From Lepidodermella squamata (Eukaryota > Animalia > Gastrotricha): 64,000 nucleotides of DNA. A program made the position numbers and the translations under genes. The notes below the pieces were generated by a model. That model was not told where the DNA came from and did not search any database. It worked only from the letters and a program-made list of their open reading frames with translations. Of this stretch, positions 14,695-37,385 are shown one piece after another (position 1 is the stretch's first letter; every line of letters begins with the position of its first letter). The stretch is taken from positions 4,030,001 to 4,094,000 of the forward strand of contig JBLDXI010000032.1 of assembly GCA_047495785.1 (NCBI GenBank). The letters are read 5' to 3'.

Positions 14695-14886
14695 AGAGTT
14701 TGGACGCCGAAAAAAGTTCGCATGGGAAAATATTCGATTAGCAAGTCCATTTAATCACGATAAAAACTGTTTAAGGAGGATTTTTTATTTTTCCATCTCA
14801 CGAAAGCAATATTCACTAATATTTGACCACAATGCAGGATAACACAGGATGAAGTCTATGCTATATCATTTTTATAGTGTGGCAGA

Positions 14887-17324: not shown

Positions 17325-17721
17325 TTTTATTCTAATTATTTTCAAGTAATTATTTTGGACATTTGTTTCATGAAGATTTTTCACGCCTTTTTTAAATTGA
17401 GGACTCGAATAATTAAATATTTTATTCTCACTTTCAGTCATTTGCAAGTTAAAAATATTCAAAAACGAGGATAATTTTACAGAGGACGCTGTTAAATTCG
17501 CAGTCCCCTGGGGCGAAGCTCAAATCACCACGACCATTCAAGCAACTAATAATTGAATTTCAGCCTCGAGATAGGCGAAAGATTAACCCACGGCAAAAAT
17601 TACTAGAAAACTAGAAAAACAACTTAAGATGGAGGATTAAAAATTGAGACATTAAGTCTAAACCGGAAAGGAAACAGTTCCGCCTCGCAGTTCCACTCTT
17701 GCCGGTCAAGTCAAGCGAGCA

Positions 17722-18054
17722 ATGAATAAAGCACTCATTTTAGGCGTGCTGTTTGTTTTCGGAAGTGCTAATCGCTTCACCTTCGGCCGCCAGCACGACG
17801 ACGCCCTACAAATTGGGAAGCGTGGTTTCGGTAGCCTACTGCCCGGTTTGACCGCTCCCAAGGAAAACTACGATCGAATAACCTCAATTTTCAGCCGAGT
17901 GGTCCAAAAGCGGCTATTAGGTGGGACTTTGTCGGCCAGAGTTACTCCGCCTGCTCGTAAATTGGCCCTGAATTATGATACAAGTTACGCCTCGAAAAGA
18001 ACTAGCAATGTTCGACGCAATCAAAAGCATTACCGACGACAATTTACTTATTGA
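17722..18054 (+). CDS. Secreted prepropeptide with several KR sites
   Basis: Hydrophobic N-terminus; GKR-GFGSLL, KR-LLGG, KR-TS. Confidence 0.72.
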   Translation: MNKALILGVLFVFGSANRFTFGRQHDDALQIGKRGFGSLLPGLTAPKENYDRITSIFSRVVQKRLLGGTLSARVTPPARKLALNYDTSYASKRTSNVRRNQKHYRRQFTY

Positions 18055-18105
18055 AAATAAATTGGTAAAAACAAAAATTTGTTTTAATTAGGTTTTTTTG
18101 AAATA

Positions 18106-18396
18106 ATGGCGAAATCTGTCGTCATTGCTATAATTTTGGCTTCGGCTGTTGTGTTGTGTCTCGCTCAGCCGCCGAGGAAATACGGCTCCTTTCGTCAAAA
18201 CAGTGCTATCCCAACCAAGCTCCAGCTCCTCCGGCTCGAAGCCGACCCGCCAAGTAATATCGTCCACGAAAAAGCCGCGCCTTCCTTTCGATCTTTTAAC
18301 AGACAACGAGTTGCCGGTGGGATTCGAGATGAAAAACGAGCGGTATCACCCTATTTCAGCGGCGGTAGGTGGAGCCTCAAAACCAGTTACCTATAA
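18106..18396 (+). CDS. Secreted prepropeptide
   Basis: Strong signal peptide; KR-AVSPYFSG-GR is a possible amidated peptide. Confidence 0.72.
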   Translation: MAKSVVIAIILASAVVLCLAQPPRKYGSFRQNSAIPTKLQLLRLEADPPSNIVHEKAAPSFRSFNRQRVAGGIRDEKRAVSPYFSGGRWSLKTSYL

Positions 18397-18882
18397 TTTC
18401 AACAACTTTCGAAAAAATTTCCTCCACCCTGTTACTTCAATTTCCGCGTCTAATTTAGTTTATGTCAATAATAAGGGCAAGGATGAATCGTTCGGAGCAC
18501 CATTAGCTAAAATGAACAAAACTCAAGAGCCGGTTCATCGCGTGATTTTCGTTTCACCTCAGGATGCTGAGGTCGTTTATTCAATGCCGAAACCTTTGAA
18601 ACTATTGATATTTCTCATTTTCATTTCGACTTGTTCGATAATAGCCTGTTTACTTCTATCCCGGCGCCGAAAGAATGTCTGAAATATATACATTTGAAAG
18701 GATTCCTAAACCAAATAAAATTTATTACGACGAACCTGGGACACTTGTGAAAGTCCTAAGACCCCACGCATAGAAAATTTTCATTAAGTTTTCCAGCTCA
18801 GCGTTGGAATGCGGAAAAAAACAAAGGGGGCGCGAATATCATTATTTATTTTTTCTCTCGCATTTTTTATTAAGCCGAAATT

Positions 18883-19251
18883 ATGGCATCAATACTTACT
18901 TTATGCCTGACTATCTCTATTCCGGTTTTACTGAACAGTGCTTCCGCGCGCATCAGTTATTCCGAGCAGCTTAATAATGCCATTATACAGAAGTTTGCCC
19001 GCGGCTACTTCGATCAACCGGAGGTGAATGAATCACCATCACAGTTGCGGCAGAACATGAGGCGCGGCAGTCAGAGCGCGGCAGTCAGCAGCCAGAATCA
19101 AGCGTTAATTTTGAAGAAGATCGTCCAGACGCTGAAGCAGCATCAGCTGACGTCTGGCGCGCATTGGAATGGCGCTTCCTCGGCTATGGTTTTCAGCCGG
19201 AAAGCTGGCATTGCCCGCACAAAAGCGGAAAAACAACATGAAACCCAGTGA
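18883..19251 (+). CDS. Secreted basic peptide precursor
   Basis: Signal peptide ending ASA; RR, KK and RK sites. Confidence 0.7.
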   Translation: MASILTLCLTISIPVLLNSASARISYSEQLNNAIIQKFARGYFDQPEVNESPSQLRQNMRRGSQSAAVSSQNQALILKKIVQTLKQHQLTSGAHWNGASSAMVFSRKAGIARTKAEKQHETQ

Positions 19252-19773
19252 AAAATTTGTATTTTGTCCTACCTAATGTTTTCCTAATTACTGTGAGTGA
19301 GAAGAATACATGACAGAAAGGCGAAAATCAGGAAACGACACTTGTTTTTTTAATCGAAAGATGTCCCTGTTCATTATGAAACGCGATATTATCGAAAAAC
19401 AAACGGACCATTTAAGTCCGTTTAAGCTGTTTTCTTTCTGAGAGGATCATCAGGAGTTTTACAATGAGTTTACTTTTTGCTTCAAGCAATTTTTGTACAA
19501 TTCGTGAAAACTCAATCTATCATCTTGAAACCCAGGTATGTTTTGGTATTTTGATTCAGTTAATTTACAGCTGATGAGCATTAATTGAGTGGCTGGTTAG
19601 TTTGAAGAGCTCATTAAATCGCGGTTTTTGAGACGTTCATTAGCTAGTAAGCATGTGATATGAGTGCTATTTCGTGCAGGTCGAACCGGTATAATGATGT
19701 TTTGTTGTAGGATATAAGATCGTCTCAAAAAATCAAACATTCATTATACTCTCCTAATTCTTTCGTAATAGAA

Positions 19774-20088
19774 ATGAGCCGATTGCTACTACTGCTAGCT
19801 CTAACTCTGGTAGTTTTCTTGGCTGGAAATGGCTGTCTTGCCGAGCAAAAGGTCTTGAACCTTCAGGAAGTTATCGATCGAATCACGGCTAACATTATGG
19901 CGCATCGATTCAGCCGCGGGATCGTGGGACCGTTACCCGGGAAAGCGGAACGGAAATCGCTGGGTAAAAATCGATTACGACCAAGGACCAAAATTCTGAT
20001 GTTGAAAAAAACTGCGCCGCAAACTAACGTCATATCCGCGAAAACAAAGCACCTATTCAGCTGGCCTATTAACTATTTCTTCTTCTGA
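19774..20088 (+). CDS. Secreted basic peptide precursor
   Basis: Leu-rich signal peptide; upstream GATATAAG; AATAAA downstream. Confidence 0.72.
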   Translation: MSRLLLLLALTLVVFLAGNGCLAEQKVLNLQEVIDRITANIMAHRFSRGIVGPLPGKAERKSLGKNRLRPRTKILMLKKTAPQTNVISAKTKHLFSWPINYFFF

Positions 20089-20479
20089 TGTTATTATTTT
20101 TGTCTGAGTTTTAATCAGAAAAAAGCTTTCATGAATAAAGTTAGATTCTTGATGCTGTGTCCGCATATTTTAGGGACTGAAGGCGAGACGATGAAATTGC
20201 ACGCAACCCCCGCGCTCTTACTATGGACGCTGATGACGGATAATATTTCATCTTCACATCACCCTATGACTCAATATATCATTCACTAGGTATATATTGC
20301 ATAGTCAACGCGAAAATATGTGTGTTTCTTGATATTACGGCCGCCTGCATACCGGAAATGATTGTGATTAAAGGTCAAAAGCCGGTTGTAAACACTTGGA
20401 ATTTCGAAGATAAAAACAGCTCATCGGCTTTATTTTCAATCAGTATATTTTCAAATTTCTTCCAGAAAAAAAGCATATC

Positions 20480-20959
20480 ATGCTCATCCGAATTTCCTTC
20501 GCTATAGTACTTCTAGCTGACTACGTCGTGGTAGGCTCAGGCTTGGAACAAATGCAGATAGATGGTGATAATCTAGCCCTTGTTAAACGAGCTGGAACTG
20601 CCGGTAACAGCTACAACGGTGGTAGTAGGCGCCGGCAATCATCGAATCAAGCCTCTACCTCGAATAAATTAATCGGAAACCGGCATCAAGCTATACGGCA
20701 GCAACATAGGAGTCAACGGCTGAAAATCGCAAAATTTATTGCAACCTATCTGCCTCAAGAAATGCGCCAACGGCTATCTAGATCAAACAACCTCGGTTCT
20801 GTTTCACTGTCTGCTCTTGGCAAGACTGCTAGTCAATCTTCATCGATGGGAAATAAGCAACTAAATGGTCAGGTGGAACTCAAGAAAACGCCGCAGCATT
20901 ACGTTAACCTACTAATGTGGCTGCGAAAGGCCAAGAATACTATTGAATTGAGAAAATAG
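20480..20959 (+). CDS. SNNLG-family secreted precursor 1
   Basis: Signal, KR-AGTAGNSYNGGS-RRR, LKIAKFIATYLP...SNNLG, YVNLLMWL. Confidence 0.88.
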   Translation: MLIRISFAIVLLADYVVVGSGLEQMQIDGDNLALVKRAGTAGNSYNGGSRRRQSSNQASTSNKLIGNRHQAIRQQHRSQRLKIAKFIATYLPQEMRQRLSRSNNLGSVSLSALGKTASQSSSMGNKQLNGQVELKKTPQHYVNLLMWLRKAKNTIELRK

Positions 20960-21204
20960 TCACTTTAAAGTTTAAGTTGATTAAAGCCTGAGAAAAATTA
21001 TATAAATATATAAATGTATATAATATGTAGCGTGATTGCTAGGAGTTGATGAATTGTGGCATTACAGAAATCGCATGAATAAAAGCGAGAATATATTTTA
21101 GCGGAACGTAATTTGCTTTTTGTGATACAACAATTCACTGCAGCTGCATTTTTTTAATTGTAACCATACTGTAACCACAGGAAATTGTCATTTTTCGACC
21201 GTGG

Positions 21205-21780
21205 CCAGACACTAGGGCGCCAGACACGAGGGCGGAAGACCAAAGAGCGCTGACAAAAGGTCGCCTGGACTTAAGGGCGGCCGGATAAAAGGGCGCCCGA
21301 ATTAACATGAAAAATATAATTTAGGATTGGGAACACAATTCGAACTCTACACAACATATTGCCCAAGAAAATATGGTGGTAACGAGAATTGCCATAATTT
21401 TCTAATTTGTATGATTGAGCAAGCATTTCGTTCATTTAAGCGATTCTTAGGACGAGCTTGGGAGATAGCCAGGTCGCTGTGCAAATTAAATGCGGAGAAT
21501 CAATCAATGGATCAGGACTGCTCAACAATTAGGACTGCATTAGGACTGCATTAGGACTGCAAAACTGGAGGCTGCCACGGCTCATCTGAATCAACTTGAT
21601 GTTTCCAAATCTGTCTTGAAAACAAGTTTCAGAACAAGGCGTAATATTCAAATATCCAGACGCCCTATTTGTCAGCGCCCTTTGGTCTTCTGCCCTTTTG
21701 TCCGGTGCCTTTTAACCCATCTGCCCTAATGTCTGTCGCCTTTTTTATTTACCTTTCGCTCTTTTAGCGGCGCCCTAATG
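21205..21780. mobile_element. Foldback/MITE-like element with inverted arrays of about 15-bp AGGGCG units
   Basis: Left arm gggcggaagaccaaagagcgctgacaaaaggtcgcctgga matches the reverse complement of right arm tccagacgccctatttgtcagcgccctttggtcttctgccc; internal TTAGGACTGCA x3; termini and TSD not resolved. Confidence 0.6.
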
Positions 21781-23514
21781 ATAGAAACGTTCGCCGAGTG
21801 ATAGAAACCAAAAGCAACGTTTAAAGAAATATTTCCTGAGCTAATACGTCGGGGTGAAAGTTTTCGATATCTGAACTTTGAAAGTCAAGATTGTAGGAAA
21901 TTTTAAGTGCTTGGATAGGCCTTGAGATCAGCTAAACAAAGATTTATATATTTATGAATTTTCGTAATCAGGTGGATGCCCATGTTGAAAAGATGTTGAA
22001 TCGAATGAGCAAAACATAAAGTATCTCTATCTATGACAATTTATGGCCTATAATATGAGCGATGACGCTATCTTGGGCCGATTGGGCTATTCATCTCAAT
22101 GGCCTATTTGAAGAATTACCTTACTTAATATTAATCTGTTTTCTCATTTTTTCCCGGCTGTGAAGTTGTAATTAAGGACAAGGAAAGACATCATACTCTT
22201 CTCTATAAATAGAGGTTTTTTTGCTGATTTTCCCGGTATTTTACCGAAATGTGAAAATAAGGGACTACTACACAATGCAACAATCGAAACGCAAGGCCTT
22301 GAAAACAAAGCCTTAAAACGTTTAAAATCATTTTTTCTGGAAAGGCCTTGAAACGTATCAAAATTGCAATTTAATTTCGCGCACGCATGGACATTTATTT
22401 TCAAGAACTGAATTTTTTTATTCTGAACTGCGTTCCTCTGTAGAGCCATCTCCTTGGTATTCTATTGAAAATTATTTTATTCAATATTATCAGCTCTGAA
22501 ATTATTGGCTAAAAATGAGTTATTGTGCAAGTAGTAGATGAGATGTTGAAGCTGGCAAAATTTTCGACAAAATCGGCCAGCTCAGCCTTGATGACCGCGC
22601 ATTCTGCATCAAGGTTTCTTCGGCTTTTTGCCCTGCGCGAAAGCCGGTGATTTTGGCTTCAACTTCGCCTAGGGCAAGGAGTTGAGAAATAGGCTCGAAA
22701 ACAGGTGTTGATGAACCGAGTGAGTGACGCAACCGACGGCTCGGGCTTGAGAACTCGCCGAAATTGCGTGGCGCTCATCTTCGATTTGCAGTTCCGTTAA
22801 CGCGTCTTGATCTGGCGGCGCTGGCGCAGGTAAATTGGCGGGGCGAAGCCGGCGCGACCCCGATTAGCGGCGATGGGGAGTCGTCTTAGGCAGACGCCGT
22901 TCTCGTGTGACCTCGCGGCGGCGCGGCGGCGCTGATTCCGGGCGCTTCAGCATCGACAGCCTCCGTAGTGGCAGCGGCAAATTTCGCGGGGCGAGTACCA
23001 GCCATGATTTTCAAACATGATACATAAAAATGTCCAAAACTCAAAAACTATGATTGAGTTTTTTGCGTGCGCTCATTTCGATAAATAGTGCACACGGCGT
23101 GGCGTGCTCTATTTGTTGCATGAGCAGCAACATGACACAAATTAATTAGTGCGCGCGTTGTTTTTTTATGCATTGTGAGCCCTTTCCTTGTTGACAAATG
23201 TTTTGACGTTTTTTTGCGTGCGCACATTTTAATCCCTTGCATTGTGTAGTAGTCCCGAAAATAAGTTTAATGAAGGTTGTTATAAGGTTGTTATAAAAAA
23301 TTCCGGATTTTAATAAAATCATCACGCCAACGTTCCTCTTTCATCCGCTTCCCGTTAGACAGGTTGTGCGTGTCTCTTTAAAGATATTCCTGATGCTTGG
23401 CTTACGTTCATTCTTTAAATTTGCGTGTCCGGAAGTGTTTACTCATGTTTGTCACTATAATATCGTTTATATCTCATGGTGTTCAATTTTTAGGCAAATA
23501 TCCAAATTGTTGAG

Positions 23515-23862
23515 ATGATGTCTCTCCATTATTTTGTGACATTAGCTTTCATCACGGTATCTGTGATATTGGTGTGCACTGAATCAGCAAGTATCTACGA
23601 TGCTAACGTTGGTGATCTCGTCGACTACGTCAACGTCGAGCCAGTATCATTTTTCATGCGAACTGGACTAAGTGGGCGCCGGAAGCATTCGAGGAACACC
23701 CCTCGTAAAGACTATCATGTTAAGAAGGACCCGAGAAAAGAGCCTGGCGAATGGAAGCATACTGTCAGCGGAGCCTATTTCGCTTTGGCTAACGGTGGTT
23801 TCTCGAACAGTGCCAGCAAATTTAGGGGCAACGATCCGCATGCTAAACATAATCATCGATAA
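23515..23862 (+). CDS. Secreted His/basic peptide precursor
   Basis: Signal peptide, acidic spacer, SG-RRK site. Confidence 0.7.
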   Translation: MMSLHYFVTLAFITVSVILVCTESASIYDANVGDLVDYVNVEPVSFFMRTGLSGRRKHSRNTPRKDYHVKKDPRKEPGEWKHTVSGAYFALANGGFSNSASKFRGNDPHAKHNHR

Positions 23863-24933
23863 AAATGCATGTTGACCTCAAATTCCGTATATCCTCATAC
23901 GTCCATCTGTTTTTGCCCGTTTGATAAGATGCGATAATTATTGAATAAAATCACCAATCAATATCTGAACAATTCCGATTTTTTGCTTAGGGTTGACTGA
24001 ACTGAATAGCCTCTGGAGAAGATGGCGTAGTTCTGAGGCGCTTAATTTCCTTCTTTTTTTATTTTTAGACGAGACTTGACAAAACTAATCAAAGAATCTA
24101 AAATTATTATCCATATTAATACAAATTACACCCACGACCTTCCACTCTTCCTGAACACCGACTTGTTTCTTTCGAGAGCCAGGGTGGCTTCTCACTTAAA
24201 AAATTAAGCATTAAGAGTCATCAACTCATTAGCTAATGAAGTTCATGCGTTTAGTAAGTCGACATCCAAGGGGCTACTATTACAATTTCTTCATATTAAA
24301 TCCTCGGCGAAAAACGTTTTTCAAGTAAATTTAGATTAAAATTGCCCGCTTAGCAGTTCAAGTAGGCGGATGTTTAGTGCTTCTTTATCACGTCTATACT
24401 AACCGACAGGAAGACTTGTATAGCCGGTGCGCATACGTACGTCTATTGCTAATTTTCAAAATCTGACTTTGCCCTTCAGATTTAGTGAACTGACGCAGTG
24501 CGAATTTTGTGCACTAGCGAATTCCGAATATAATTCCGAAATAGTGACCCGTGCTCAAAATTATGACCCACATGATGACTAATTTTTCAATTTAAACATG
24601 CAGTCCTGCGTATCTCGCGCTGTGAGGACCATTTCCTTTTTTAGTTTGGAACACTTCGAAATAAACCAGGTGTATTACCGTATTTTTCCTAGTAGCCCAG
24701 TCGCTAATAATCGCCCATTCCTAATAGGTAGTAGCCCAGGGTTGAGGGTAAAGCCGGTTCGAAAACTTCGAGAACAATGAATGATTCACCGAAAACTAAT
24801 TTTCTAATGTTTCAACATTTCGAGGTTCAAAGTTTAGTAGCCCATGCTGATATATAGGAACAAATACGGTACTTGGGAATATAGGTTATTTTTTTATATT
24901 TATATTTATCGAAATCATAGATTTTTGAGAGAC

Positions 24934-25518
24934 ATGAACAAGCTGAACCTGATCACATTGGCAGTTTTAAGTCTCTGCTTCACGAGTTCAATTTTCGCTG
25001 ACCAGTCGCGTGAATCGAATGAAATGACGCTCGGCGATCTGATGTTGCGATCGGGCGGTACATCGGCGGGGGTTGGGACGAGCTACAGCAGCAACCGACG
25101 TCAACACTCTTCATCTCAACCTTCCGTGTCAAATAAACCCATTCACGTAGGCCGGAGGCACCGCCTGCAGCGAAAGGACACCGAAAGCCGGAAGCGGAAA
25201 TTTGCCAAATTTGTCGCTACTTATCTGCCGTCTGAAGCTAAGCAACATCTCGTTAATTCGAACAATCTGGGAGTTATCAGCGCCCGAAATGGTCCATTGA
25301 TTGAGGAGCTACCCCGAGTTCTCCCGACCCCTGGAACTAGATTGGTTCGAACTATCATTAAAACCGAAACCACGACAGTCCCACCGCCACCGACCCCCGC
25401 TCCCACTCATAGGCCGTATTTCAAATCACGTGTTCCATTCGGCCGCAGAAACTCCATGTTTTACCATAAAAACCTAATCCGCTGGCTTATGGCGTCGAAA
25501 TACAATGTTGACATTTGA
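24934..25518 (+). CDS. SNNLG-family secreted precursor 2
   Basis: Likely ATG 24934 (MNKLNL signal); SAGVGTSYSSNRR, AKFVATYLP...SNNLG, NLIRWLMASKY. Confidence 0.88.
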   Translation: MNKLNLITLAVLSLCFTSSIFADQSRESNEMTLGDLMLRSGGTSAGVGTSYSSNRRQHSSSQPSVSNKPIHVGRRHRLQRKDTESRKRKFAKFVATYLPSEAKQHLVNSNNLGVISARNGPLIEELPRVLPTPGTRLVRTIIKTETTTVPPPPTPAPTHRPYFKSRVPFGRRNSMFYHKNLIRWLMASKYNVDI

Positions 25519-25893
25519 TGTTTTTCTCATCGCCCATATTATGTTTACTAGGCAGTGTGTTTTTTCAATGCAATGTACCTGTGAAAAATAAAAATGTCTT
25601 GTTTATTTATTAACGCTTCGGGTTTCGATTTAACAAGTGGTCCACTATAATAAACCTTTGATGTGTAGAGACTCCCCCGAATCATTTTCACTATACTTCT
25701 TCCCACTCAAGCGTTGCCAAGACTTCGCGAATAACAGACGTCTTTTGCGTAACTCTAGATGACCAGGTCGAAGCCCGCGGGCAAAGGATTAGATTTCATC
25801 GATGTTTACGAGTCATCCCCGCAAGTTGCGCTCAATTTTTCACATTTGAACAAATTTTTTGCCCCTTTTGCGATAGCAAAAAAATTATTCTTA

Positions 25894-26439
25894 ATGAAAG
25901 TTCCGTACTACTTATTGCTCTGGGTCGTCTCAGCCGGATTTTCCCACGCTGCTGTAGACATATCATCCGTCCGCCCTGATTTTCACGACCAATTGCTTCT
26001 CAACAAGCGAGCTGGTAGTTCAGCTGGGGTGGGCAGCAGTTACAGCAGCAATAGGCGACAATACTCATCTTCGCTGCCGTCAGTGTCTAACAAGCCGAAC
26101 CATGTTGCGAGGCGATATCGGTTAATGCAGAAAGAGGCGGAATATCGGCGACTGAAACTCGCGAAATTCGTTGCCACTTACCTGCCAACTGATGTCCGCC
26201 AGCGGCTCGTGCACTCCAACAACCTGGGCGTTGTAGGCGGCCCGAATCGGTCGATAAAACTGGCTAGAAATCCGAGATTGGTGATGAAGAATGTCGCAAA
26301 TGCACCTCTCATGAGAACTTCACACAACACGGAACAAAAGCTGGCTTTCAACGGCAGAAGGCGGGTTAATTTCCATGACGTCAATCTTGTTAAATGGCTC
26401 GGTGCTTCTAAATATGGTGTCGAAATTAAGAAAAAATAA
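25894..26439 (+). CDS. SNNLG-family secreted precursor 3
   Basis: Likely ATG 25894 (MKVPYYLLL); KR-AGSSAGVGSSYSSN-RR, LKLAKFVATYLP...SNNLG, NLVKWLGASKYG. Confidence 0.88.
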   Translation: MKVPYYLLLWVVSAGFSHAAVDISSVRPDFHDQLLLNKRAGSSAGVGSSYSSNRRQYSSSLPSVSNKPNHVARRYRLMQKEAEYRRLKLAKFVATYLPTDVRQRLVHSNNLGVVGGPNRSIKLARNPRLVMKNVANAPLMRTSHNTEQKLAFNGRRRVNFHDVNLVKWLGASKYGVEIKKK

Positions 26440-27050
26440 AATGACCATTAACAACTGAAAAGTGGGGCTTTTATTTTCTGTTATTTCCAAGAAATGACAA
26501 CAAGTGTGTTGACTAGAAAAGGGACGATTCTTGCATTCCTATATTATTTTCTCTTGATGACTTGATGAACAGAGTTGCTTATCGATTTAGGTCGATGTGG
26601 GAGATTATATTCCTCACGCCACCTGATTGATCCTCACCTCAGATTACCTTAATAAAAATCTTAATTGCGCATAATAAAATAACATCAGAGTTTATTGCGC
26701 GACGAATTATTAATTGATGAAATCAAAAGGTACACTTTTTAAGCGCGAATTTTTCGAAATTAGCGACCGTAAACTTTGAAGCACAATTTCTCATGACTAT
26801 CAGCCTCTTTTTGATATAATTCGTTTATTGATCTCGAAAGCGGCATCAAAATATCACGATGTCAATAGTTCGCCAAACCCCACTTTTCATTTTTAATGGT
26901 CAAGTAATGATGTTGTTTCAGCTGTTTTCTATCAATCGATCGATAGTTAATACTTAGGAAACGTGCGTTATTCGATGTTGACGCCCAAAAACTTGTTTTT
27001 ATCGTCCGACTTCTCAGCGTGTAAATTTTCATAACAAAATAAATCGAGAA

Positions 27051-27542
27051 ATGCATCTGCAATTTTTTTCCATAGCTGTACTAGCGGTGTCGGACATATT
27101 CAGCCTGGCTGAATGCTCTGAACTTGATGCAGGGGGATTCTTATCAATTCTGCGAACTGGGAGTACAGCTGGCTTGGGTGGAGGTACCATACCAACAAGC
27201 AGGAGACCTGCATCTAACAAGCCATCGGATATTTCTCGTCGCTATCACACCCAACGTGAAGTCGAACGATTAAGGCGGCTCAACTTGTCGAAACTTTTGA
27301 GCGCCCATGTGCCATCGCATATTTTGAAACGAATGACAACAGCTAATAATTTAGGCTTTGCAGCCATAAAGCCGGGCGTCAATAGATCAAAGTCAACTAA
27401 AGTCGGTCATAAAGTGAGCATGGCGGCGTCTTTACGTACGGCGAATGAAGAATTCAGGAAAACATGGGATAAGGTTTCGCTGTACCACGTAAATCTCATC
27501 AAGTGGTTGGCCGGCTCTAAATACGGACTGTCAGATGTTTAA
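27051..27542 (+). CDS. SNNLG-family secreted precursor 4 (ANNLG variant)
   Basis: Signal, R-TGSTAGLGGG, SNKP, RRLNLSKLLSAHVP...ANNLG, NLIKWLAGSKYG. Confidence 0.87.
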   Translation: MHLQFFSIAVLAVSDIFSLAECSELDAGGFLSILRTGSTAGLGGGTIPTSRRPASNKPSDISRRYHTQREVERLRRLNLSKLLSAHVPSHILKRMTTANNLGFAAIKPGVNRSKSTKVGHKVSMAASLRTANEEFRKTWDKVSLYHVNLIKWLAGSKYGLSDV

Positions 27543-27971
27543 ATCCTTCGCGCATTATTATCGTCAAATTTTAGTGCGCTCAGACTGGACTCGCGATATA
27601 TGTCCTAATATCCTATAATAATATATCTGAAAATCCCTCTAATAAAAATTCACAGCATGAATTGCTTATTATTATTATTATTATAAAAGCAACAAAGTAG
27701 AGGCGGTCATTTGCACTCCTCAAATTATCGATCGAATATAACAGGCAATATTGTCAGTGAATATTGAATATCATACTTCCGTTGCATCAAGCCGAAAAAT
27801 GAAGCAAATTAGGGTCATGACAAGAAGCCCGCCATGCGAACCTAGAAACGCGAGTAATATGATACTGTGTCAAACGTGACACCCGTCCCCTCTAATTACT
27901 GAGCGATTTACGCAGGAGCGAGGCAATCACAGAGCGATGCAGACTTGATAATTTCAACAAAATCTCAACCT

Positions 27972-28529
27972 ATGATTAGCTATTTATTTTACTCGATCCC
28001 GATCATATTCCTCGCCCTGGAGGCGCCAGTAAGTGTTCGCGGGCAGTACACGTTGATGGAGCAAATGGTGCTGAGTGATGCTGCCTTAAACGATAGAGAC
28101 AACAATATCGAAATTCGGAAGCGAACAGGAATATCAGCTGGCCTCGGAGGTGGTGGCAACTCAGGCGCGAGGAGGCATCAATTTTCGCGGCTTTCTTCAT
28201 CGTCAAACAAGCCTTTCGTCATATCTCGCCGATACAGATTCAAAGCCGAGGAACAGCGAAATCGGCGACTTAATTTGGATAAATTGGTATCGGCCTATAT
28301 TCCGACAGAGATTAGGCAAAGGCTCACGATATCTAACAACCTTGGCTTTTCGAAAATTCGCCCGCAACCCTACCAACAATACGCGCCAGTGAAAAATCTC
28401 GCAGTGAGAACGGCGGCTAAATCGCCAGTTATTCCTTACAACGGGATGCGATATTTTCGAAAACCGACAGGTCACCATCTCAATCTCATAAAATGGCTGA
28501 AAAGCTCAAAATACGGCTACGATGTATAG
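27972..28529 (+). CDS. SNNLG-family secreted precursor 5
   Basis: Likely ATG 27972; RKR-TGISAGLGGGG, RRLNLDKLVSAYIP...SNNLG, NLIKWLKSSKYG. Confidence 0.87.
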   Translation: MISYLFYSIPIIFLALEAPVSVRGQYTLMEQMVLSDAALNDRDNNIEIRKRTGISAGLGGGGNSGARRHQFSRLSSSSNKPFVISRRYRFKAEEQRNRRLNLDKLVSAYIPTEIRQRLTISNNLGFSKIRPQPYQQYAPVKNLAVRTAAKSPVIPYNGMRYFRKPTGHHLNLIKWLKSSKYGYDV

Positions 28530-29131
28530 CTACGTTTACATTAGTATTTGCGATGAGAAGCTTCCTTTTGCTGCGATGTTTTTTTTCAGTCGAATGAGAA
28601 ATCTAAATAAATAATGCGGTGCAATGATTCAATTTTATTATTATTTTTCTTGGCTGAATTGATAGAATTTCCAAGAATTACTACGACACGACCTCCGCCC
28701 TATTAATAAGAGCCATTCACAGGATTAGCCAATCGATACCTTATTTTGGCAAGGCTAATGTAAATAATAAAAGAAAATTCAATTTTTCTACTGCGCACTC
28801 CGGATTTGACCGGGTATCTTTATTCCGATCGGGATTTAACGGAGCGATAATTTGCATCAACAGACAACACGCGCAAGTGCACGCGTAATTGCCGCTGAGT
28901 CGACGCTGTCCGCCTTCCGATGCGAATGAGTCCAATTGGGCGAAAAAAGTTTGTTTCCTAGACATCATAGCTTGGGCGTGTGACTCAATATTTTTTGGCC
29001 CACACACGCAGCCGCATTACATCACCGCGTGTCCTATCGCCTAATTTTTTTCAATTGCGATATTGTTCTAGTTTCTTTTCGATTCAATCCACTTGTAAAT
29101 AATAAAACTCCTGAGATAATATTTTCAAATT

Positions 29132-29593
29132 ATGAATGTCAGTATTATTCCTTATGCGTTAATCTGGACTATTTGCGCGTTCACCTTCACGGCCGATGCA
29201 GTTAACGATAGCTTCGACGAATCTGATATTTTTGAACTAGTCAAAAGGAGAGGAGCAGCTGGCGGGAACAGCTACAACGGGCGGCGAAGAGCGTCCGCAA
29301 GTCATGCTTCGTCGACCAACCGGGCTTATCACATGGGCAATCGGCACCAATCTATGCGCGAATTTACTCGGGCTCAGAAATTGAAAATCGCAAAATTCGT
29401 CGCGACTCAAATTCCGTCATCGATGAAATCATTAATGCTAAGGTCCAATAACGTTGGGATGCCGCTTCATTACAGCAAATCGCTGACTTTATTCAAAAAC
29501 AAGGCAAGAACTGTGGATGAGAAGTTGCGACGTCAGTTCAAGCTAAACGTTTTAAATTGGTTGAAAGCTATGAAAAATGGCGCCGATGTTTGA
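29132..29593 (+). CDS. SNNLG-family secreted precursor 6 (SNNVG variant)
   Basis: Signal, acidic pro-region, KRR-GAAGGNSYNG-RRR, LKIAKFVATQIP...SNNVG, NVLNWL. Confidence 0.88.
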   Translation: MNVSIIPYALIWTICAFTFTADAVNDSFDESDIFELVKRRGAAGGNSYNGRRRASASHASSTNRAYHMGNRHQSMREFTRAQKLKIAKFVATQIPSSMKSLMLRSNNVGMPLHYSKSLTLFKNKARTVDEKLRRQFKLNVLNWLKAMKNGADV

Positions 29594-29921
29594 TATTAAT
29601 TCATTATATTCATAGTTTTAGGTAGAAAAACAAATAAATTTTTGAAATTTTTGCTGTTTACACATTTTATGGTTGAATTAATTAGAACACTGAACTATTA
29701 CTTCCGCGTGCTCATCAATAAAATTAGCCGAATGACTTCCGGTAAATATATTTACAAAATCGCAAAAATCGATACAGTTTACGCGCGAGTGCGATTTTAC
29801 GCGCCCCCCGCGATGCCACTCTTCGATGGGCCACTCTCACCTCCACCTTAATGGGTGTATTTTGGCAGACAGGCATGACAATGCGTGGGTCGTCATCAGT
29901 GAAGTTTTGTTATTTCAAAAC

Positions 29922-30524
29922 ATGGAATTGATGCCCAGAGAAACTTTGAGCGCCTTCTCTAAAGCTTTCGTCATATTCGCGTTCGCTTTCACAGTTTTGC
30001 TACTTTTTATGACAGGCGTCGTTGAACAGATTAGACACCCTGAACTCCAGTACCTTGATGACTTTACTACTGTGTCGGATGAAATAGCGAACACCGCAAC
30101 AGTAGATGCGCCGGTACCATTCCCAGAACCAATAAATGAAACACTGGACAAGTCTTTAGATGTCGATAAAAGGGGGAGTGGTTCGGCTGGTGGCAATTAC
30201 GGCAACCGAAGGCGGCCTGGTAGCCAATCTCCAGCAAGCCGAGGTGGCCTAGCTGCTAACCGCCACCACGTCGCCCGCGAGCAGAGCAGAGCTCAGCAGC
30301 TCAAGTTGAAAAAGTACATCGCCACTCAAATACCGTATGGCATTCGACAGAAGTTGGTCATATCTAACAACCTGGGTTCGGCCGCTCTTGCTCGCATGAA
30401 TTCGAACAACAATAGCCGAATTTTTCGCACGAGGAATGGCACAATCATCGACACTCGCAGAATGGGCTTTCAGTCCTACGTAAATCTGCTCATGTGGATG
30501 AGAACGTTGAAGAACGGACTTTGA
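29922..30524 (+). CDS. SNNLG-family precursor 7 (longer signal/anchor and pro-region)
   Basis: Likely ATG 29922 or 29931; KR-GSGSAGGNYGN-RRR, KYIATQIP...SNNLG, YVNLLMWM. Confidence 0.85.
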   Translation: MELMPRETLSAFSKAFVIFAFAFTVLLLFMTGVVEQIRHPELQYLDDFTTVSDEIANTATVDAPVPFPEPINETLDKSLDVDKRGSGSAGGNYGNRRRPGSQSPASRGGLAANRHHVAREQSRAQQLKLKKYIATQIPYGIRQKLVISNNLGSAALARMNSNNNSRIFRTRNGTIIDTRRMGFQSYVNLLMWMRTLKNGL

Positions 30525-30744
30525 GTCCCAGGACTTTCTGATATAGTATAAGTATAATAAGTTTTAAACGAATAAAAATGTAATGGCTGATGACGCTAAT
30601 CTGTTTCCGATGATGATGTTGTGGGCTTTTCCGATGCGTGCTTGAGGTGTTAATACATGACCATGATTTTTCGTGACTACGCGCCATGATCAACGTCTCG
30701 CCTACAACTAACAACAAGGGTCAATCGTTGAAATTTTTGCGACC

Positions 30745-31239
30745 ATGAGGAAATCTACTTTTTGCCTATTAGCATTTTTTGCCAGTCTAGCTGCTGCGCA
30801 GAACTCAGCTGATGATTTGCTAAAACGGGCTGGTAGTACGGCCGGTGTTGGCAGTTCATCGACCAGCAACCGCCGCCAATTGTCATCGACTCAGCCGTCG
30901 GTTTCAAACAAATCAAGCCACGTCGGTAGCAGGAGCCGGCTGCAACGCCAGGAAATGCTGCATCGCCGCCTTAAAATTGCGAAGTTTGTCGCGACAATCC
31001 TGCCATCGGATGTTCGCGCTAAATTGCTGCACAGCAACAATTTGGGAATAGCCAGCTCGAAGATTAGATTTAAGCAGGACAATAAATTTAAGATTGGAGA
31101 CCGCAAGGAGTTGCCGATGATTAGAACTGCTCAGTCGGCTGAGCCATTCAAACCACTTGTACTTCGAAAGCCTAAATTTTACCACACAAACGTCGCGAAA
31201 ATGGTGCTAGCGAACAATAACTATGGATTTCAATTCTGA
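30745..31239 (+). CDS. SNNLG-family secreted precursor 8
   Basis: Signal, KR-AGSTAGVGSSSTSN-RR, LKIAKFVATILP...SNNLG. Confidence 0.88.
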   Translation: MRKSTFCLLAFFASLAAAQNSADDLLKRAGSTAGVGSSSTSNRRQLSSTQPSVSNKSSHVGSRSRLQRQEMLHRRLKIAKFVATILPSDVRAKLLHSNNLGIASSKIRFKQDNKFKIGDRKELPMIRTAQSAEPFKPLVLRKPKFYHTNVAKMVLANNNYGFQF

Positions 31240-32208
31240 ATATTTTATCGCAGTTGATATATTCAAATAAAAAAACTTTAAGAGACGCTTTAAAAATCAT
31301 TTTAAACACCCTCTACTTATGATCACGATTAATTTTATTCATTTATTCCTCTTTCTCCTCCACATAATTGATTGTGTCAGTTTTGAGGTGACACGTGACA
31401 GGTAGAAAATCTGTGCTTTTTTGCTTTTCATCCATGTAATAAAATTGCAAACTCCCACATCATGACGTGTCACCTTGAAAGTGACAAAAAACGAGCTGAG
31501 CTCCGATTTTGGGCAGTGCTAACGATATCATCAAGAGGGACATTTTGTTACTTATTACATGGTTTGAGTTCCCAAGGTTTAATAAACTTGTTTCAGCAGC
31601 CAAACCGCCGTTTTATACTTGTCACCTTTCGCCTTAAAATAATTGGCTTGAACAAGCTTAAAGATAGCCGCAAGCTCAAATATCAAGCTCTAATATTCCC
31701 CTGTCCTTGTAACCTGAAGGTCATATTAACAATTAACATGCCTCTATTTTATCTCGAAAAATGAATTTAGTGTTATAAATAGTCTGACATAAATCGTGCC
31801 AGAAATAAGTGTGCAGATTTTGGCGAGCTTCCATGAATAGGAAGTTGGAGCCCCACATGCACGAGAGGAAGTGCGTTTCCTAGGAGTTTTAGATCGCAAT
31901 TCAGATGATACCGCTACATTAAGTGGGTGTAGTGCAGAGGATCGCTCTAGAACAATTACACGACTTTCATTATTCCTATCGATCGCTTGACGTCCAGGCT
32001 TTTGGCTTATCGAATTAAACAGTGTCAAAAACTTTGAACATATTTTTTCGTCATCGTGTTTCCAATTTTCGAATGCGGCAGAAATTCCCTCAAGGGCGTT
32101 ATTGAATTAACACCATCGGACGACACATTGGTCACCATGGTTTGAATAAAACTCGAACATGTCAACTCCGACATGAAATTATTGTTATCAAAAGACTTGA
32201 GCGTATAA

Positions 32209-32634
32209 ATGAAATTAACTCTTGTTTTAATGCTACTAGGATTTCATCTCTCCACCGTTGTTCTCGGGAATCGAGATGACAACTTCTCCCTGGAAGCCTT
32301 TAAAAGAGCCCCTGGCTCTGCTGGCAGTAATTACGGCGGCGGCAGACGGCGATCTCAGGCACCAACTAGCAACACCTCGCAACGAGATGTTATTAAGGCG
32401 AACAAACTACGACTAGCGAAATATATTGCTGCTCAACTTCCAATTCCGATTCGGCAACAACTTTCGCGATCGAATAATCTTGGTTCTGTGTCATTTTCGC
32501 AGCTTGAAAATCTTATGAAATCACTGCCGAATAATCACAGCTCGACAAGCACTGATTCATCTTTGAAGAAACCTATTTATCAATACGTTAATTTGCTGCG
32601 ATGGCTAAGATCGCTTAACGTTGACTCACTGTGA
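32209..32634 (+). CDS. SNNLG-family secreted precursor 9
   Basis: Signal, KR-APGSAGSNYGGG-RRR, LRLAKYIAAQLP...SNNLG, YVNLLRWL. Confidence 0.88.
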   Translation: MKLTLVLMLLGFHLSTVVLGNRDDNFSLEAFKRAPGSAGSNYGGGRRRSQAPTSNTSQRDVIKANKLRLAKYIAAQLPIPIRQQLSRSNNLGSVSFSQLENLMKSLPNNHSSTSTDSSLKKPIYQYVNLLRWLRSLNVDSL

Positions 32635-33014
32635 CATCGAGGATTCAATATTATAAATAGCTATGCCAAAAACTGATCTCTTCTCATGAAATCGGATCGC
32701 CGCAGACCTTAATAAAACGAACATCGCAACTTTTTCTTGGGTGAGTCAACGCCGTTTGGAGCGTTTTTCGATCGTTCCTACTCGTGGAGAGTTAGCTAAT
32801 TTTATCAGAATTCTAGGCGATTATCCATATTGGAATTCGTAAATTCCCGAGTATCAAATTACAGACGCTACCTTGCGTCAGCCTTCATCGTCACTCAGAC
32901 TTGATCATTTAGGTATCTGACATATCGCAGATTGCTTTGATGTCTCAATTTTGCATGCATCTCCAGGGAGTCTCGCTCAGCAGGACTTATCTGGTCTAAT
33001 ATTATCCGTAAATT

Positions 33015-33431
33015 ATGTCGATGAAACTATCGAAATTTTTCAGCCTTTTCCTAGCAGCAGATCTCATCGCGAAGTCATGCGTTTGTGGGCCAATCGGTCG
33101 CAACTTTTTATCAGGTCGCAGTGGGGTTATGTTTGCAGCCCCTACAACTGCAATTTCACTCTCAACAACGGCGAGCTCACAAACAGAAACATCGCTGCTG
33201 ACGGCCGATGATTTGGATCCGCTCGTCCAGGCGTATCGAAGACTCTTCGCCGCTCTGAATGCGAAGCTTGAGGGAACAGGCCGATCCGTCTTCATCGACT
33301 CTGACTCGCAGCACCGCATATTCTCGCTTCAAAAACGTGTCAATAAAATGTTTCAAACTTTGGAACTGAAAAAGAAACACAGGCCCAAGTGGCAGCGTTG
33401 GCCGCCCACGTTGTTTGAATATTCAAAATAA
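33015..33431 (+). CDS. Secreted peptide precursor
   Basis: Signal-like N-terminus, KR before a basic C-terminal peptide, AATAAA right after the stop. Confidence 0.65.
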   Translation: MSMKLSKFFSLFLAADLIAKSCVCGPIGRNFLSGRSGVMFAAPTTAISLSTTASSQTETSLLTADDLDPLVQAYRRLFAALNAKLEGTGRSVFIDSDSQHRIFSLQKRVNKMFQTLELKKKHRPKWQRWPPTLFEYSK

Positions 33432-33834
33432 CAATAAATTGTCTTCTGAATAAACGCCTTGCTATGTTATGGGGAAGTTGAAGGATAATGTTTCCTGATT
33501 TCTGTATCGCAACTTAGCCTGTTTCCCCGCCTACTGTCCTATTATTTGTCGCGATTCGGATCAGTTTCAGAAGAGAAAAGGCGCATCTTCCTATAGTTCT
33601 ATGCTTTGTTAGGTGGGTCTCACATGACGTTTCGTGCTCACGAGGCGTGATATGCGCGGATACTTCTGTAGTGTCTTCCGGCCGTGGATGCGAGGGGAGA
33701 GCCTTTTAACGCTGAATCGATAACATTATTTTTGCCCTTATCTCATCTGACGGCACTATATAGCTACTGTTCTACTTTTCCTATAACTCAACTCGTGGAT
33801 TAAACTCGGAAAATTCCGGTTATTAGAAACTGTA

Positions 33835-34242
33835 ATGCTGATTTCAAAGTCATTCACCCATTTAGCTTGTCTGTTGGTTGTAGTGGCCATCTGGGCTATC
33901 GAGCCAAGCTTTTGTCATTCTGCCGGCGACGATTCTTCCTCGTCCGAGGAGTTGCACAATCACGCCGGCGACATTGGCCATGTACATGCGCCTAACCAGC
34001 GGCACGCCCTCAGAATGGCCAGCCGTCTCGCCGGGGATGTCTCAAGCTCGGAGGAGGATCAACCAACCGTGAAAAGGGGTTTCCTGAAAGATTCTCTCAC
34101 CGCCCTCATCCAACAAGAACAGCCAGTGAATCGCTCCAACGAACGCCGCTACACCCTTCCCCCTGTCATCAAGAACGTGATTGAGAGGCAGCTGCAGCGA
34201 ATGAAGGCTAGGGACCTGAAAAAAACTTCGTCTCAGTTTTAA
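33835..34242 (+). CDS. Secreted prepropeptide (acidic/His pro-region, KR-GFLKDSL)
   Basis: Signal, SSSEE repeats, KR and RR sites. Confidence 0.78.
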   Translation: MLISKSFTHLACLLVVVAIWAIEPSFCHSAGDDSSSSEELHNHAGDIGHVHAPNQRHALRMASRLAGDVSSSEEDQPTVKRGFLKDSLTALIQQEQPVNRSNERRYTLPPVIKNVIERQLQRMKARDLKKTSSQF

Positions 34243-34706
34243 ACAACCTGCAAACTCAGTCATCATAAAGATGTATATTTCATCAAAGTTTGTGCATCTT
34301 TTACTTGGAGCTGTTTTCTGTTTTATTCTAATTCCAGGCGAGGCTAAACAAATAGTAAAAATATTGATTGATGTTTCAGTTTCGATGTTTTTCGAAAATT
34401 TCTCATATTTCAATGATTTCAAGCTGATTAGCTGATTTTTGTCTTACCCTCACCATCACTTCCGTGATTTCAAGAACACGAGGCGGAGATACATTTTTGA
34501 AATTCCCTCGGTGGACAATTTTTGAAATAGTAATAGTGGCACTGTAATAAAAATTGACCTTGTGATACAGCCACGTTAGTGAGCGAAAATTGTTCTGGCG
34601 CCAATTTGCTGTGTAAGCGGATTAGTTCAATAAAAAACCCATGTCGAAGCTTACTGAATCCTAACCAGAGTTCACATGAGTATAAGAGACTAACATTTTT
34701 ACAACA

Positions 34707-35078
34707 ATGATTATTTATGCATCAATTCTAGTATTACTTCTCATGTCGGAATATGCAAATGCAGCTGATTACGGCCAATATTGCGTGATGAATGCTGAAT
34801 GTAACAAATATCTGACCTGCATCGCCTCAGTTTGCACCTGTCCGACATGGATGCCGTATTACATCGGTGATAACAGATGTGCTGATTATCTGACAACAAC
34901 GCCCCGGTCTTGTCCGACCCGAACTTGCACTGCAAATGGCGACTGTGATGGTCTGATAAATCCGTATTGCGATCGGTTCAAATGCTGCAATGTCTGGAGA
35001 TCAGGAGACGAATCACTTAAAGCCGGAGCCTTAATTTTCATATGTTCCCTTCCAATCTCGTTAAATTATTACATATAA
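34707..35078 (+). CDS. Small Cys-rich secreted or GPI-type protein with an EB-module-like domain
   Basis: Signal; C-x5-C-x5-C-x4-C-x-C...C block, a second six-Cys block, hydrophobic C-terminal tail. Confidence 0.75.
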   Translation: MIIYASILVLLLMSEYANAADYGQYCVMNAECNKYLTCIASVCTCPTWMPYYIGDNRCADYLTTTPRSCPTRTCTANGDCDGLINPYCDRFKCCNVWRSGDESLKAGALIFICSLPISLNYYI

Positions 35079-35305
35079 TATAGGCCTTTACTAGAATAAA
35101 TTCATAAATGTTTTACTGAGAGGAGCGTATACGGCATTTTTTAATCAATCCTATGTTAGGATGTGGTATCCCATGGCGACTTGTTTTTTTTTGTTTCCTG
35201 CCTTTTTTACAATATTAAGAATTGAGATTGCGCAGGAGAATGGTTTTTCGGGCGAATAATGTCGTGAGTGCACTTTCGAATTTTATCGGTATAATTTCCA
35301 GACAT

Positions 35306-35470
35306 ATGCACTTGGCTCGAATCGGCGCTTTCAGCTTGGCATTCGCCATGGCCATCGGCCTATTCGCCTCTTCGACAGCCGCCTTCTACGAATATTACGG
35401 CGATTTGGACTTCTCAGATGGCTTGACTTTCAACTCATCAATCGTGGTTAACAAATCAATTGACTCATGA
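35306..35470 (+). CDS. Very small secreted acidic peptide (54 aa)
   Basis: ATG 35306, signal MHLARIGAFSLAFAMAIGLFASSTA, AATAAA downstream. Confidence 0.55.
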   Translation: MHLARIGAFSLAFAMAIGLFASSTAAFYEYYGDLDFSDGLTFNSSIVVNKSIDS

Positions 35471-36012
35471 AAAATAGGGACAATTCCAGGCCGATATTTA
35501 TCAACATTTTTTTATCACGTGGCTCATGTCTAGCGAAAATGAATTAATAAAAGGCGCTTTTTTTACTTGTGTCGGGAAAGTTCGTGATTTTAATTAGCGT
35601 GCGCAGCCGACGGCCAATGTTGCCCTCGGCAATTTCGACACTGTTTTTTCGCCATCATCGAATCCTCTGAGGAAGCGCAACGCAGAGTGGGAGTGTAAAA
35701 TTAGTTTTTTGTTGCTATTACGGATTTTTGTGGTGGATTTTTTTCAAACTAGAAAGACTTACCAAAGATCAAACATATTTTTCTTTACAAAACAGGCGCA
35801 ATCCATATTGATGGCCAATAAAGAAAAATATTGACTCCAGGTAACCATCTATCAAGGAATGAATCATTGACTGGACATATTTATTTACCCTCCTACTTGC
35901 GGACACAGCAGCGTATAAAACCCCCGCTTTAAATTATTTGGGACTCAATTTGTAAAACCCTAAATTCTTCTTCAATTTTGATAGAGAATTTAAACATTCT
36001 TAACAAGGAAAA

Positions 36013-36429
36013 ATGGCGAAAATTATGCAAGCAGCAGTCTTTGCAGTCTTCCTATTGGTTGCGATCAATTTATTGGAAACCGAGGCCTTCAACCCGATTC
36101 TGACCGGTGGTAAGTACGAACCGAAAGCTCCAGTTGTTGTTCGACCGCCGCATCTGCGCATGAACAAACGCTGGATGACCCTGGACGACGATTCGACATC
36201 GCACGAATCGATCAGTGAGTCATCATCCCCTTCTCCAGAAGCTTTTGACAAACGGGGCTTTGCTGATTTATTCAAACAGGTCAACGTTGATTATGATGCT
36301 GATCGGCAAGTAGTCACGAAACAGCCGCTTCGAAAATTCATGTACGCCCCAGCGCAATACAGACACGTTTTTAGCTTGAGAAAAGGCGGCAGTGCTAGGC
36401 TTTTCCCTAAAATTATTTTAACACTTTGA
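36013..36429 (+). CDS. Neuropeptide-like precursor with multiple KR sites
   Basis: TATAAAA at 35914; signal; FNPILTG-GK, MNKR-W, DKR-GFADLFK. Confidence 0.8.
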   Translation: MAKIMQAAVFAVFLLVAINLLETEAFNPILTGGKYEPKAPVVVRPPHLRMNKRWMTLDDDSTSHESISESSSPSPEAFDKRGFADLFKQVNVDYDADRQVVTKQPLRKFMYAPAQYRHVFSLRKGGSARLFPKIILTL

Positions 36430-36648
36430 ACGCATGAGTCATTCAAGTAAAACTGTTGTTTCATCGGAAAAAAATGCAAGGACGTCATGATGTTTTCAAT
36501 GACGCATGAGGACTTCCGTTTCAGACTTGGGCCTGCTATTCTGGTGTCAGGTTACAAGTGTTGCGGAGACATCAGCGCTGTTTTGATGAATAAGTTGATA
36601 CTATTTAAAACTTTAATATTTCTCGGCTCTTAGCTCTCAGGAATAGCA

Positions 36649-36891
36649 ATGCGTTTTTTGTCAGTATTCTCGTTATGGCTACTTCTTCTCCTGGCAGTGA
36701 TTTCCGGATCATCGAAACCTTTCCGACCTCCAGCCAAGTCAGCTTTCAGCCCAGCTAATCGCCTGATGAAGCCACAGATGGATCGAGAAGCTAATGGCAA
36801 CAAACCCCGAGCAGCTAACGAAAACGTCGAGTTTCACCGAGTCGTTCCAAGCTTTCGAAGTTATGCAAAGAAATTCAGAAAGACACGTTAG
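36649..36891 (+). CDS. Small secreted basic peptide
   Basis: Leu-rich signal; upstream CTATTTAAA. Confidence 0.7.
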   Translation: MRFLSVFSLWLLLLLAVISGSSKPFRPPAKSAFSPANRLMKPQMDREANGNKPRAANENVEFHRVVPSFRSYAKKFRKTR

Positions 36892-37385
36892 AGAAAAAAC
36901 CTAAACAAATGTTGTCACCATCGTTCATCTTATGATATTTAGGCTGTTGGATGTTGTAGCTTGGCTGGAACATTATCACCTCAATAAGATTTTTAAATTT
37001 CCGACTAAATACTCGCTATCTGTGCGATCAGAGAAAAAATATTTTAATTTTACTTGACCGGATTTCGAATTGTCGTTCGATTTTAAATTCCATGCAAGCC
37101 TCCGTTACTCCGCAAAACGGCAGTGTTCTGTTAAAGGTTTTAAGAAATTAAATGGCGTGCTAATAAATGACTTTTCGCACCCTAATTTCCTTCGAATTTG
37201 AACTGAAACGAGAAGACTTTTAATCACCAGTCTGGAGGGAAGTGCGAACTGAAATAGTATTCTTTTGTTTTTTGTTTTTCCCACGTTTGTTGCCGGACGA
37301 CGTAGTAACCACGCTGAGAAGAGTTCGTGATTTCAAACGTACAGTTAGCTATTCATAGCATTTACGTTTTATTTTAAACGTTGTC

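Follow-up and report, generated by a model that had tools for sequence, protein, structure and literature searches.

Nine tandem genes for putative secreted precursors, the SNNLG family, in a one-strand gene island of the gastrotrich Lepidodermella squamata

A stretch of 64,000 nucleotides from the genome of the gastrotrich Lepidodermella squamata (assembly GCA_047495785.1, contig JBLDXI010000032.1, positions 4,030,001 to 4,094,000 of the forward strand), referred to here as the window, was analyzed for a group of small genes which an earlier note, made from the sequence alone, had described as a family of nine prepropeptides sharing the motif SNNLG. All positions are coordinates of the 64-kb window, and the genes are taken to begin at the start codons named in that note. 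Nine intronless open reading frames (ORFs) of 141-200 codons were indeed found at these starts, all on the plus strand between positions 20480 and 32634, and are called genes 1 to 9 of the SNNLG family (Table 1).

The nine proteins could be aligned over their full length, and every one of the 36 pairs was significant by BLASTP, with expectation values (E) of 6e-7 to 2e-40. A profile built from the nine members and compared with the six-frame translation of the window recovered exactly the same nine (E 1e-42 to 4e-68), every other match having an E of 0.39 or more, and there are therefore no further copies or recognizable relics within the 64 kb. The three interleaved subtypes proposed earlier were recovered in the tree as supported clades: clade A with genes 20480, 29132, 29922 and 32209 (support 94/95), clade B with 24934, 25894 and 30745 (88/93), and clade C with 27051 and 27972 (97/96). 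Along the chromosome the clades follow each other in the order A B B C C A A B A.

The proportion of synonymous differences (pS) was 0.67-0.91, which is saturated, against a proportion of nonsynonymous differences (pN) of 0.40-0.58, and pN was lower than pS in all 36 pairs. Residual similarity at the DNA level was limited, within the island of genes described below, to the codons of the most conserved family motifs. Saturation of synonymous sites combined with restrained amino-acid change points to old duplicates under purifying selection. A polyadenylation signal (AATAAA or ATTAAA) lies 21-212 nucleotides (nt) past the stop codon of each gene. The exact products of two family genes and of one neighbor were looked up and were absent from public gene calls, as might be expected of unexpressed relics or chance ORFs, yet that explanation is extremely unlikely: nine ORFs of this length have remained open on a single strand despite the saturated synonymous divergence, the motifs are conserved, pN is below pS throughout, and a polyadenylation signal follows every stop. 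The family consists of nine real, old tandem paralogues that have been kept by purifying selection.

In four genes (24934, 25894, 27972 and 29922) the named start is an internal methionine of a longer ORF. A TAG or CAG is located 13-22 nt upstream of three of these starts (24934, 25894 and 29922) and, if it serves as a splice acceptor, would exclude the upstream in-frame ATG; for gene 2, the TAG 13 nt before ATG 24934 would exclude the in-frame ATG at 24844. The only alternative start upstream of 27972 is a TTG. Candidate spliced-leader acceptors, CAG or TAG and often past a T-rich run, were seen 13-60 nt before seven of the nine ATGs (20480, 24934, 25894, 27051, 27972, 29132 and 29922), and none was found within 90 nt upstream of ATGs 30745 and 32209. 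A search for k-mers common to the nine upstream regions gave none that was notable once multiple testing was allowed for.

The proposed layout of signal, pro-region, (K)R, Gly/Ser-rich peptide, RR(R), helix, linker and C-terminal segment was borne out, each element being present. The signal-like N-terminus comprises 14-30 residues; judged by hydrophobicity, every member has among its first 30 residues a 12-residue stretch with a Kyte-Doolittle mean of 1.7-3.0, and small residues precede a plausible signal cut in eight members, while the N-terminus of 29922 could be a signal anchor. The pro-region is short, mostly acidic and poorly conserved among the paralogues (mean identity 14%). It is followed by an arginine in all nine proteins, as KR in seven and as a single R in two (read from the sequences, one being misplaced by the alignment). 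The next element, named peptide 1, is an uncharged, Gly/Ser-rich 11-15-mer (mean identity 37%) that is closed by RR or RRR in every member, the R at alignment column 100 being invariant. Segment 2, which is basic and rich in Ser and Asn (mean identity 37%), leads to a helix segment which is 33 residues long in all nine members, free of insertions and deletions, and the best conserved part of the protein at a mean identity of 45%, with invariant K, P, N, N and G. The helix segment ends in SNNLG, replaced once by ANNLG and once by SNNVG. A hypervariable linker of 22-57 residues (11% identity) separates it from a basic pair, present in all nine, and from a C-terminal segment of 19-26 residues built around NLxxWL (NVxxMV in one member; mean identity 36%). 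The basic residues at the borders of the segments are fixed in position in eight or all nine members.

Some details of the earlier description required correction. The mature parts of the proteins are free of cysteine as claimed, while four members carry one Cys in the signal peptide. The motif AK(F/Y)xAT holds in seven of the nine proteins and fails in clade C, which has SKLLSA and DKLVSA at this position. The distance from the conserved P to SNNLG, given as 8-9 residues, is 9 residues in all nine.

The two members said to carry G-RRR after peptide 1 are 29132 and 32209, and the two amidated peptides predicted from them, GAAGGNSYN-NH2 and APGSAGSNYGG-NH2, are consistent with the standard rule of a Gly followed by basic residues. 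None of the nine proteins has a Gly-plus-basic signal after SNNLG or after the C-terminal segment. The hydrophobic moment of the best 18 residues of the helix is 0.22-0.45, corresponding to a moderately amphipathic helix, and the best 11 residues of the C-terminal segment reach 0.33-0.63. An internal repeat made up of these two segments was also considered and was rejected on an hhalign probability of 0.7%.

Two AlphaFold2 runs, for genes 25894 and 32209, were made with the nine-sequence alignment. The mean predicted local distance difference test score (pLDDT) was 54-55 and the predicted template modeling score 0.25-0.26. The central helix alone reached moderate confidence, with a pLDDT of 72-81, the C-terminal helix fell below about 56, and the remainder was predicted to be disordered. 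The earlier note had suggested a cationic unit of two helices that pack against each other across a dispensable linker; this was absent from both models, for which the alignment is shallow, and such a packed unit is unsupported by the predictions. Disorder together with one helix would fit a precursor rather than a globular protein.

The architecture agrees with that of secreted prepro-proteins, in which conserved segments alternate with spacers and the basic sites are fixed in position, and the term "prepropeptide" used for the family is plausible but unproven from the sequences. The reading which we favor, and to which we give somewhat less than an even chance, is that the SNNLG proteins are prohormone-like, multi-product secreted precursors. 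It is favored because conserved segments of fixed length stand between unconstrained spacers, because the basic residues are positioned, and because a signal is followed by an acidic pro-region ending in KR, which is a common propeptide layout. It is strengthened by the island neighbors, which resemble classical multi-copy peptide precursors. We infer the following steps of secretion, cleavage, amidation and signaling. The N-terminal signal peptide would direct the protein into the secretory pathway, where a convertase would cut past the Arg that ends the pro-region and again past the invariant RR(R). A small uncharged Gly/Ser-rich peptide, amidated in the case of 29132 and 32209, would be released, as would a larger cationic polypeptide bearing the 33-residue helix that ends in SNNLG; cleavage at the conserved basic pair, which would detach the C-terminal NLxxWL segment, might or might not follow. 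Extracellularly, the products would serve as ligands similar to hormones or neuropeptides, recognized through their conserved segments, with the linker and pro-region as spacers.

Several observations weigh against processing of this kind. Dibasic pairs number 51, compared with 39 expected from shuffling (P = 0.014), which is only a slight excess, because the proteins are basic throughout (17.5% K+R). The net charge of +10 to +23 over the whole protein is unusual for prohormones. Since basic residues are conserved inside the helix as well, a conserved basic position alone does not mark a cleavage site. Before the C-terminal segment, five members have KK or RK as the basic pair and three have a Pro directly after the pair, and Pro also directly follows the RR that closes peptide 1 in two members; KK, RK or a following Pro is a poor context for cleavage by prohormone convertases. 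The amidation signal is limited to two of the nine members, and peptide 1 has no aromatic or hydrophobic C-terminus of the type common in small neuropeptides.

Alternatively, the family may encode disordered, positively charged proteins that are secreted for a material or defensive purpose, as parts of a cuticle or egg-shell matrix, a glue, a mucus or an antimicrobial coat. Such proteins would lose no more than the signal and pro-region, and their basic residues would provide charge and not cleavage sites. We consider this a serious possibility, if a rather doubtful one. The very high net charge of the full-length protein, the composition rich in Ser, Asn and Gly, the predicted disorder, a dibasic pair count near the expectation from composition, and the poor convertase contexts of the C-terminal basic pair are all in its favor, and a signal, an acidic propiece, KR and a cationic remainder are also typical of many antimicrobial-peptide precursors. 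It is opposed by the small size of the proteins and their lack of internal repeats, by the only moderate amphipathicity of the helix, and by a tyrosine content of just 3%, unlike that of glues of the dihydroxyphenylalanine (DOPA) type. The mature part is conserved and the prepro part variable, the reverse of what is typical of antimicrobial-peptide families. The uncharged residues P, N, N, G and N are invariant, and the indel-free helix has stayed at 33 residues across saturated divergence, which suggests that the proteins have a specific partner and do not act through bulk charge. Ligand, pheromone, antimicrobial peptide, mucus component and adhesive may all be considered as candidate roles of the products.

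The family had been called unrecognized, and no detectable relative or described family was found in any library or collection searched. For all nine proteins Pfam gave no family at E up to 1 and NCBIfam no match. With the family alignment as the query, a word-index search of 5.8 billion proteins gave no match, and an exhaustive profile search of 1.84 billion representatives gave zero matches at E 0.001. The best score in the ESM Atlas was 0.81, under the useful range. Whole-family, helix and C-terminal profiles run against the PDB sequences at E up to 10 returned chance matches only (E 0.3-1.2). In JGI metagenome DNA, the clade B alignment gave 168 pattern matches, of which 0 were confirmed, and the degenerate pattern AKF[VI]AT..P-x9-SNNLG, which matches four genes in the window, gave 0 matches. 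The searchable literature contains SNNLG in papers on amylin only and six other family motifs in no paper. No recognizable relative thus exists in any sampled organism; the collections seemingly lack this genome's own proteins, so close relatives of the animal may have the family. From its sequences the SNNLG family appears to be undescribed and lineage-restricted.

The same searches bear on the proposal that the genes are highly diverged members of a described family of helical peptide hormones, such as amylin/calcitonin, parathyroid hormone or PDF, which we regard as very improbable. Its attraction is that SNNLG also occurs in rat amylin; there are likenesses to parathyroid hormone (HNLG and WLRKK-like motifs) and to PDF as well, and we take these to be due to chance. 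The calcitonin/amylin, parathyroid and PDF families are all represented in the Pfam library, in which nothing matched at E up to 1, and no hormone chain was found with the three profiles in the PDB sequences. Kinship with amylin/calcitonin (PF00214) was rejected for want of a profile match, of a Cys-Cys ring, which the Cys-free mature proteins could not form, and of a Gly-plus-basic signal past SNNLG or past the C-terminal segment; that with parathyroid hormone (PF01279) and PDF (PF06324) was rejected because 0 of the nine proteins matched in Pfam and the helix and C-terminal profiles found no PDB hormone. The resemblance to amylin is treated as chance because statistical similarity, disulfide ring and amide signal are all missing.

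Table 1. Features of the SNNLG family, of one representative protein (gene 3) and of the surrounding region (window coordinates)
Feature	Position	Strand	Remarks
SNNLG family gene 1	20480..20959	+	Clade A; 159 aa; peptide 1 AGTAGNSYNGGS followed by RRR; ATTAAA 21 nt past stop
SNNLG family gene 2	24934..25518	+	Clade B; 194 aa; longest linker (57 aa, Pro/Thr-rich); site 1 monobasic R; AATAAA 69 nt past stop
SNNLG family gene 3	25894..26439	+	Clade B; 181 aa; representative in first fold
Gene 3, putative signal peptide (aa 1-19, ends SHA) and pro-region (aa 20-39, ends KR)	25894..26010	+	From hydrophobicity and segmentation
Gene 3, peptide 1 (aa 40-53, uncharged, Gly/Ser-rich) and closing RR	26011..26058	+	
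Gene 3, basic helix, 33 residues, ends SNNLG	26131..26229	+	pLDDT 75-81; sole confidently predicted element
Gene 3, hypervariable linker	26230..26355	+	pLDDT ~40
Gene 3, basic site (RRR) and C-terminal NLxxWL...KYG segment	26356..26436	+	Short helix predicted at low confidence
SNNLG family gene 4	27051..27542	+	Clade C; 163 aa; ANNLG variant; site 1 monobasic R
SNNLG family gene 5	27972..28529	+	Clade C; 185 aa
SNNLG family gene 6	29132..29593	+	Clade A; 153 aa; SNNVG variant; G-RRR closes peptide 1 (predicted amidation)
SNNLG family gene 7	29922..30524	+	Clade A; 200 aa; long N-region with a hydrophobic run of ~20 residues (signal peptide or anchor); pro-region long and acidic (net -8)
SNNLG family gene 8	30745..31239	+	Clade B; 164 aa; degenerate C-terminal motif NVAKMV
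SNNLG family gene 9	32209..32634	+	Clade A; 141 aa (shortest); G-RRR closes peptide 1 (predicted amidation); second fold
Island of ~25 co-oriented small ORFs with signal-like N-termini, including the nine family genes	17722..42529	+	From screen
Upstream flank, ~six Cys-loop receptor genes	1541..17462	-	Neur_chan_LBD and Neur_chan_memb matches; shared ORF motifs
Downstream flank, at least two Cys-loop receptor genes	42769..47362	-	Neur_chan_memb match (43365-44408); motif of transmembrane segments TM2-TM3 shared by ORF 46409-47362

The nine genes belong to a larger island of small genes. A screen of the region from 17.6 to 42.6 kb for ORFs of at least 70 codons in which a Met is followed by a strongly hydrophobic stretch returned 24 ORFs on the plus strand and 0 on the minus strand, gene 29132 falling just under the threshold. 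No kinship to the SNNLG family was detectable for the small secreted neighbors (best BLASTP E 0.012-0.77), and none of the neighbors outside the family belongs to a Pfam family. Among them, the ORF at 39353-39739 (+) encodes an acidic precursor with two copies of PLLGLF-KR, and that at 38903-39136 (+) a further acidic precursor which is related to it in the N-terminal part (BLASTP E 0.003); the two resemble a pair of multi-copy neuropeptide precursors. The product of 41993-42529 (+), without a Pfam family, has nine KR sites, two copies of IPHKG-KR (predicted to give IPHK-amide) and several ..GRH.. peptides. Its neighbor at 40954-41502 (+), also without a Pfam family, ends in ..VFKG.

Other features of the island were recorded as well. 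A peptide beginning KR-GF.. occurs in four otherwise dissimilar ORFs (17722-18054, 33835-34242, 36013-36429 and 41993-42529, all +), which possibly form a second, loose family. The only Cys-rich member of the island, with 13 Cys, is located at 34707-35078 (+) and has a weak match to the EB module (E 2e-4) that does not reach the Pfam cut-off. Family genes 1 and 2 are separated by a gap of 4 kb, in which there are an inverted repeat resembling a miniature inverted-repeat transposable element at 21216-21709 (42 nt, 86% complementary, arms 410 nt apart) and short tandem repeats at 21204-21234 and 21528-21561. At 23515-23862 (+) there is a secreted ORF whose pro-region ends in ..FFMR-TGLSG-RRK, like the start of peptide 1 in clade C; the remaining layout is absent and there is no profile match, and the ORF may be a remnant or derived member of the SNNLG family.

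The island is bounded on both sides by genes for Cys-loop receptors, which are very divergent, the best outside match being only 22% identical (a snail nicotinic acetylcholine receptor subunit). A small secreted ORF at 13287-13664 (-), located among the channel genes, carried an amidase-like label, and Pfam gave no family for it. Further downstream there are two tandem copies of a multi-exon gene, at 57011-59676 and 62509-63619 (+), with long identical protein stretches (for example in ORFs 57647-58306 and 62509-63174); in the first copy these are followed by an exon that encodes several hydrophobic segments (58744-59676). Pfam searches with two exons of these copies returned nothing, and Rfam and tRNA scans of the window were empty. 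The GC content of the window is 40-47%, consistent with the published value of 43% for the L. squamata genome (PMC11660948).

The position of the island invites the thought that the SNNLG proteins, perhaps with the whole 25-kb island, are endogenous ligands or modulators of the flanking divergent Cys-loop subunits. We hold this to be very unlikely; if true, genes for ligands and their receptors would be linked in one island, and pentameric channels gated by proteins or peptides would be exemplified here.

A catalogue of gastrotrich peptide hormones or neuropeptides was not found in the searchable literature, and the nine-gene family therefore gives work on peptidergic or secretory biology in the phylum something definite to begin from. 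The family and its island supply specific genes for in situ mapping, for peptidomics and for the deorphanization of receptors; should the proteins have a material or defensive role, they would be candidate matrix, glue or defense proteins. The locus also illustrates that many genes for secreted proteins in a poorly sampled lineage cannot be named by homology-based annotation. Although the family is new, tandem genes for secreted precursors of narrow taxonomic range are already familiar as a kind; more unusual is the island itself, with its small secreted-protein genes all on one strand and receptor clusters on either side.

Among known systems, amylin and calcitonin (Calc_CGRP_IAPP) share with the family an SNNLG past a basic helical stretch, as in rat amylin, and differ in the ring, amide signal and sequence profile discussed above. 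Precursors of cationic antimicrobial peptides are comparable in plan: Hydra arminins and frog dermaseptin-type precursors likewise combine a signal, an acidic propiece, KR and a Cys-free cationic helical part in taxonomically restricted tandem families. The SNNLG proteins differ in having conserved mature motifs behind a variable prepro part, a much longer cationic part, and a helix that is only moderately amphipathic. The precursors of lineage-specific prohormones and neuropeptides of invertebrates are comparable as a kind and not as a homologous family. These have acidic spacers whereas the SNNLG proteins are basic throughout, and the main SNNLG product would be long (60-100 residues) and unamidated, with no repeated peptide copies and with some poorly cleavable basic sites. 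The likeness to such precursors is found in the signal, the acidic pro-region ending in KR, the tandem paralogues with no relatives found outside the genome, the amidation signal of two members, and conserved segments that stand between unconstrained spacers with basic residues at their borders.

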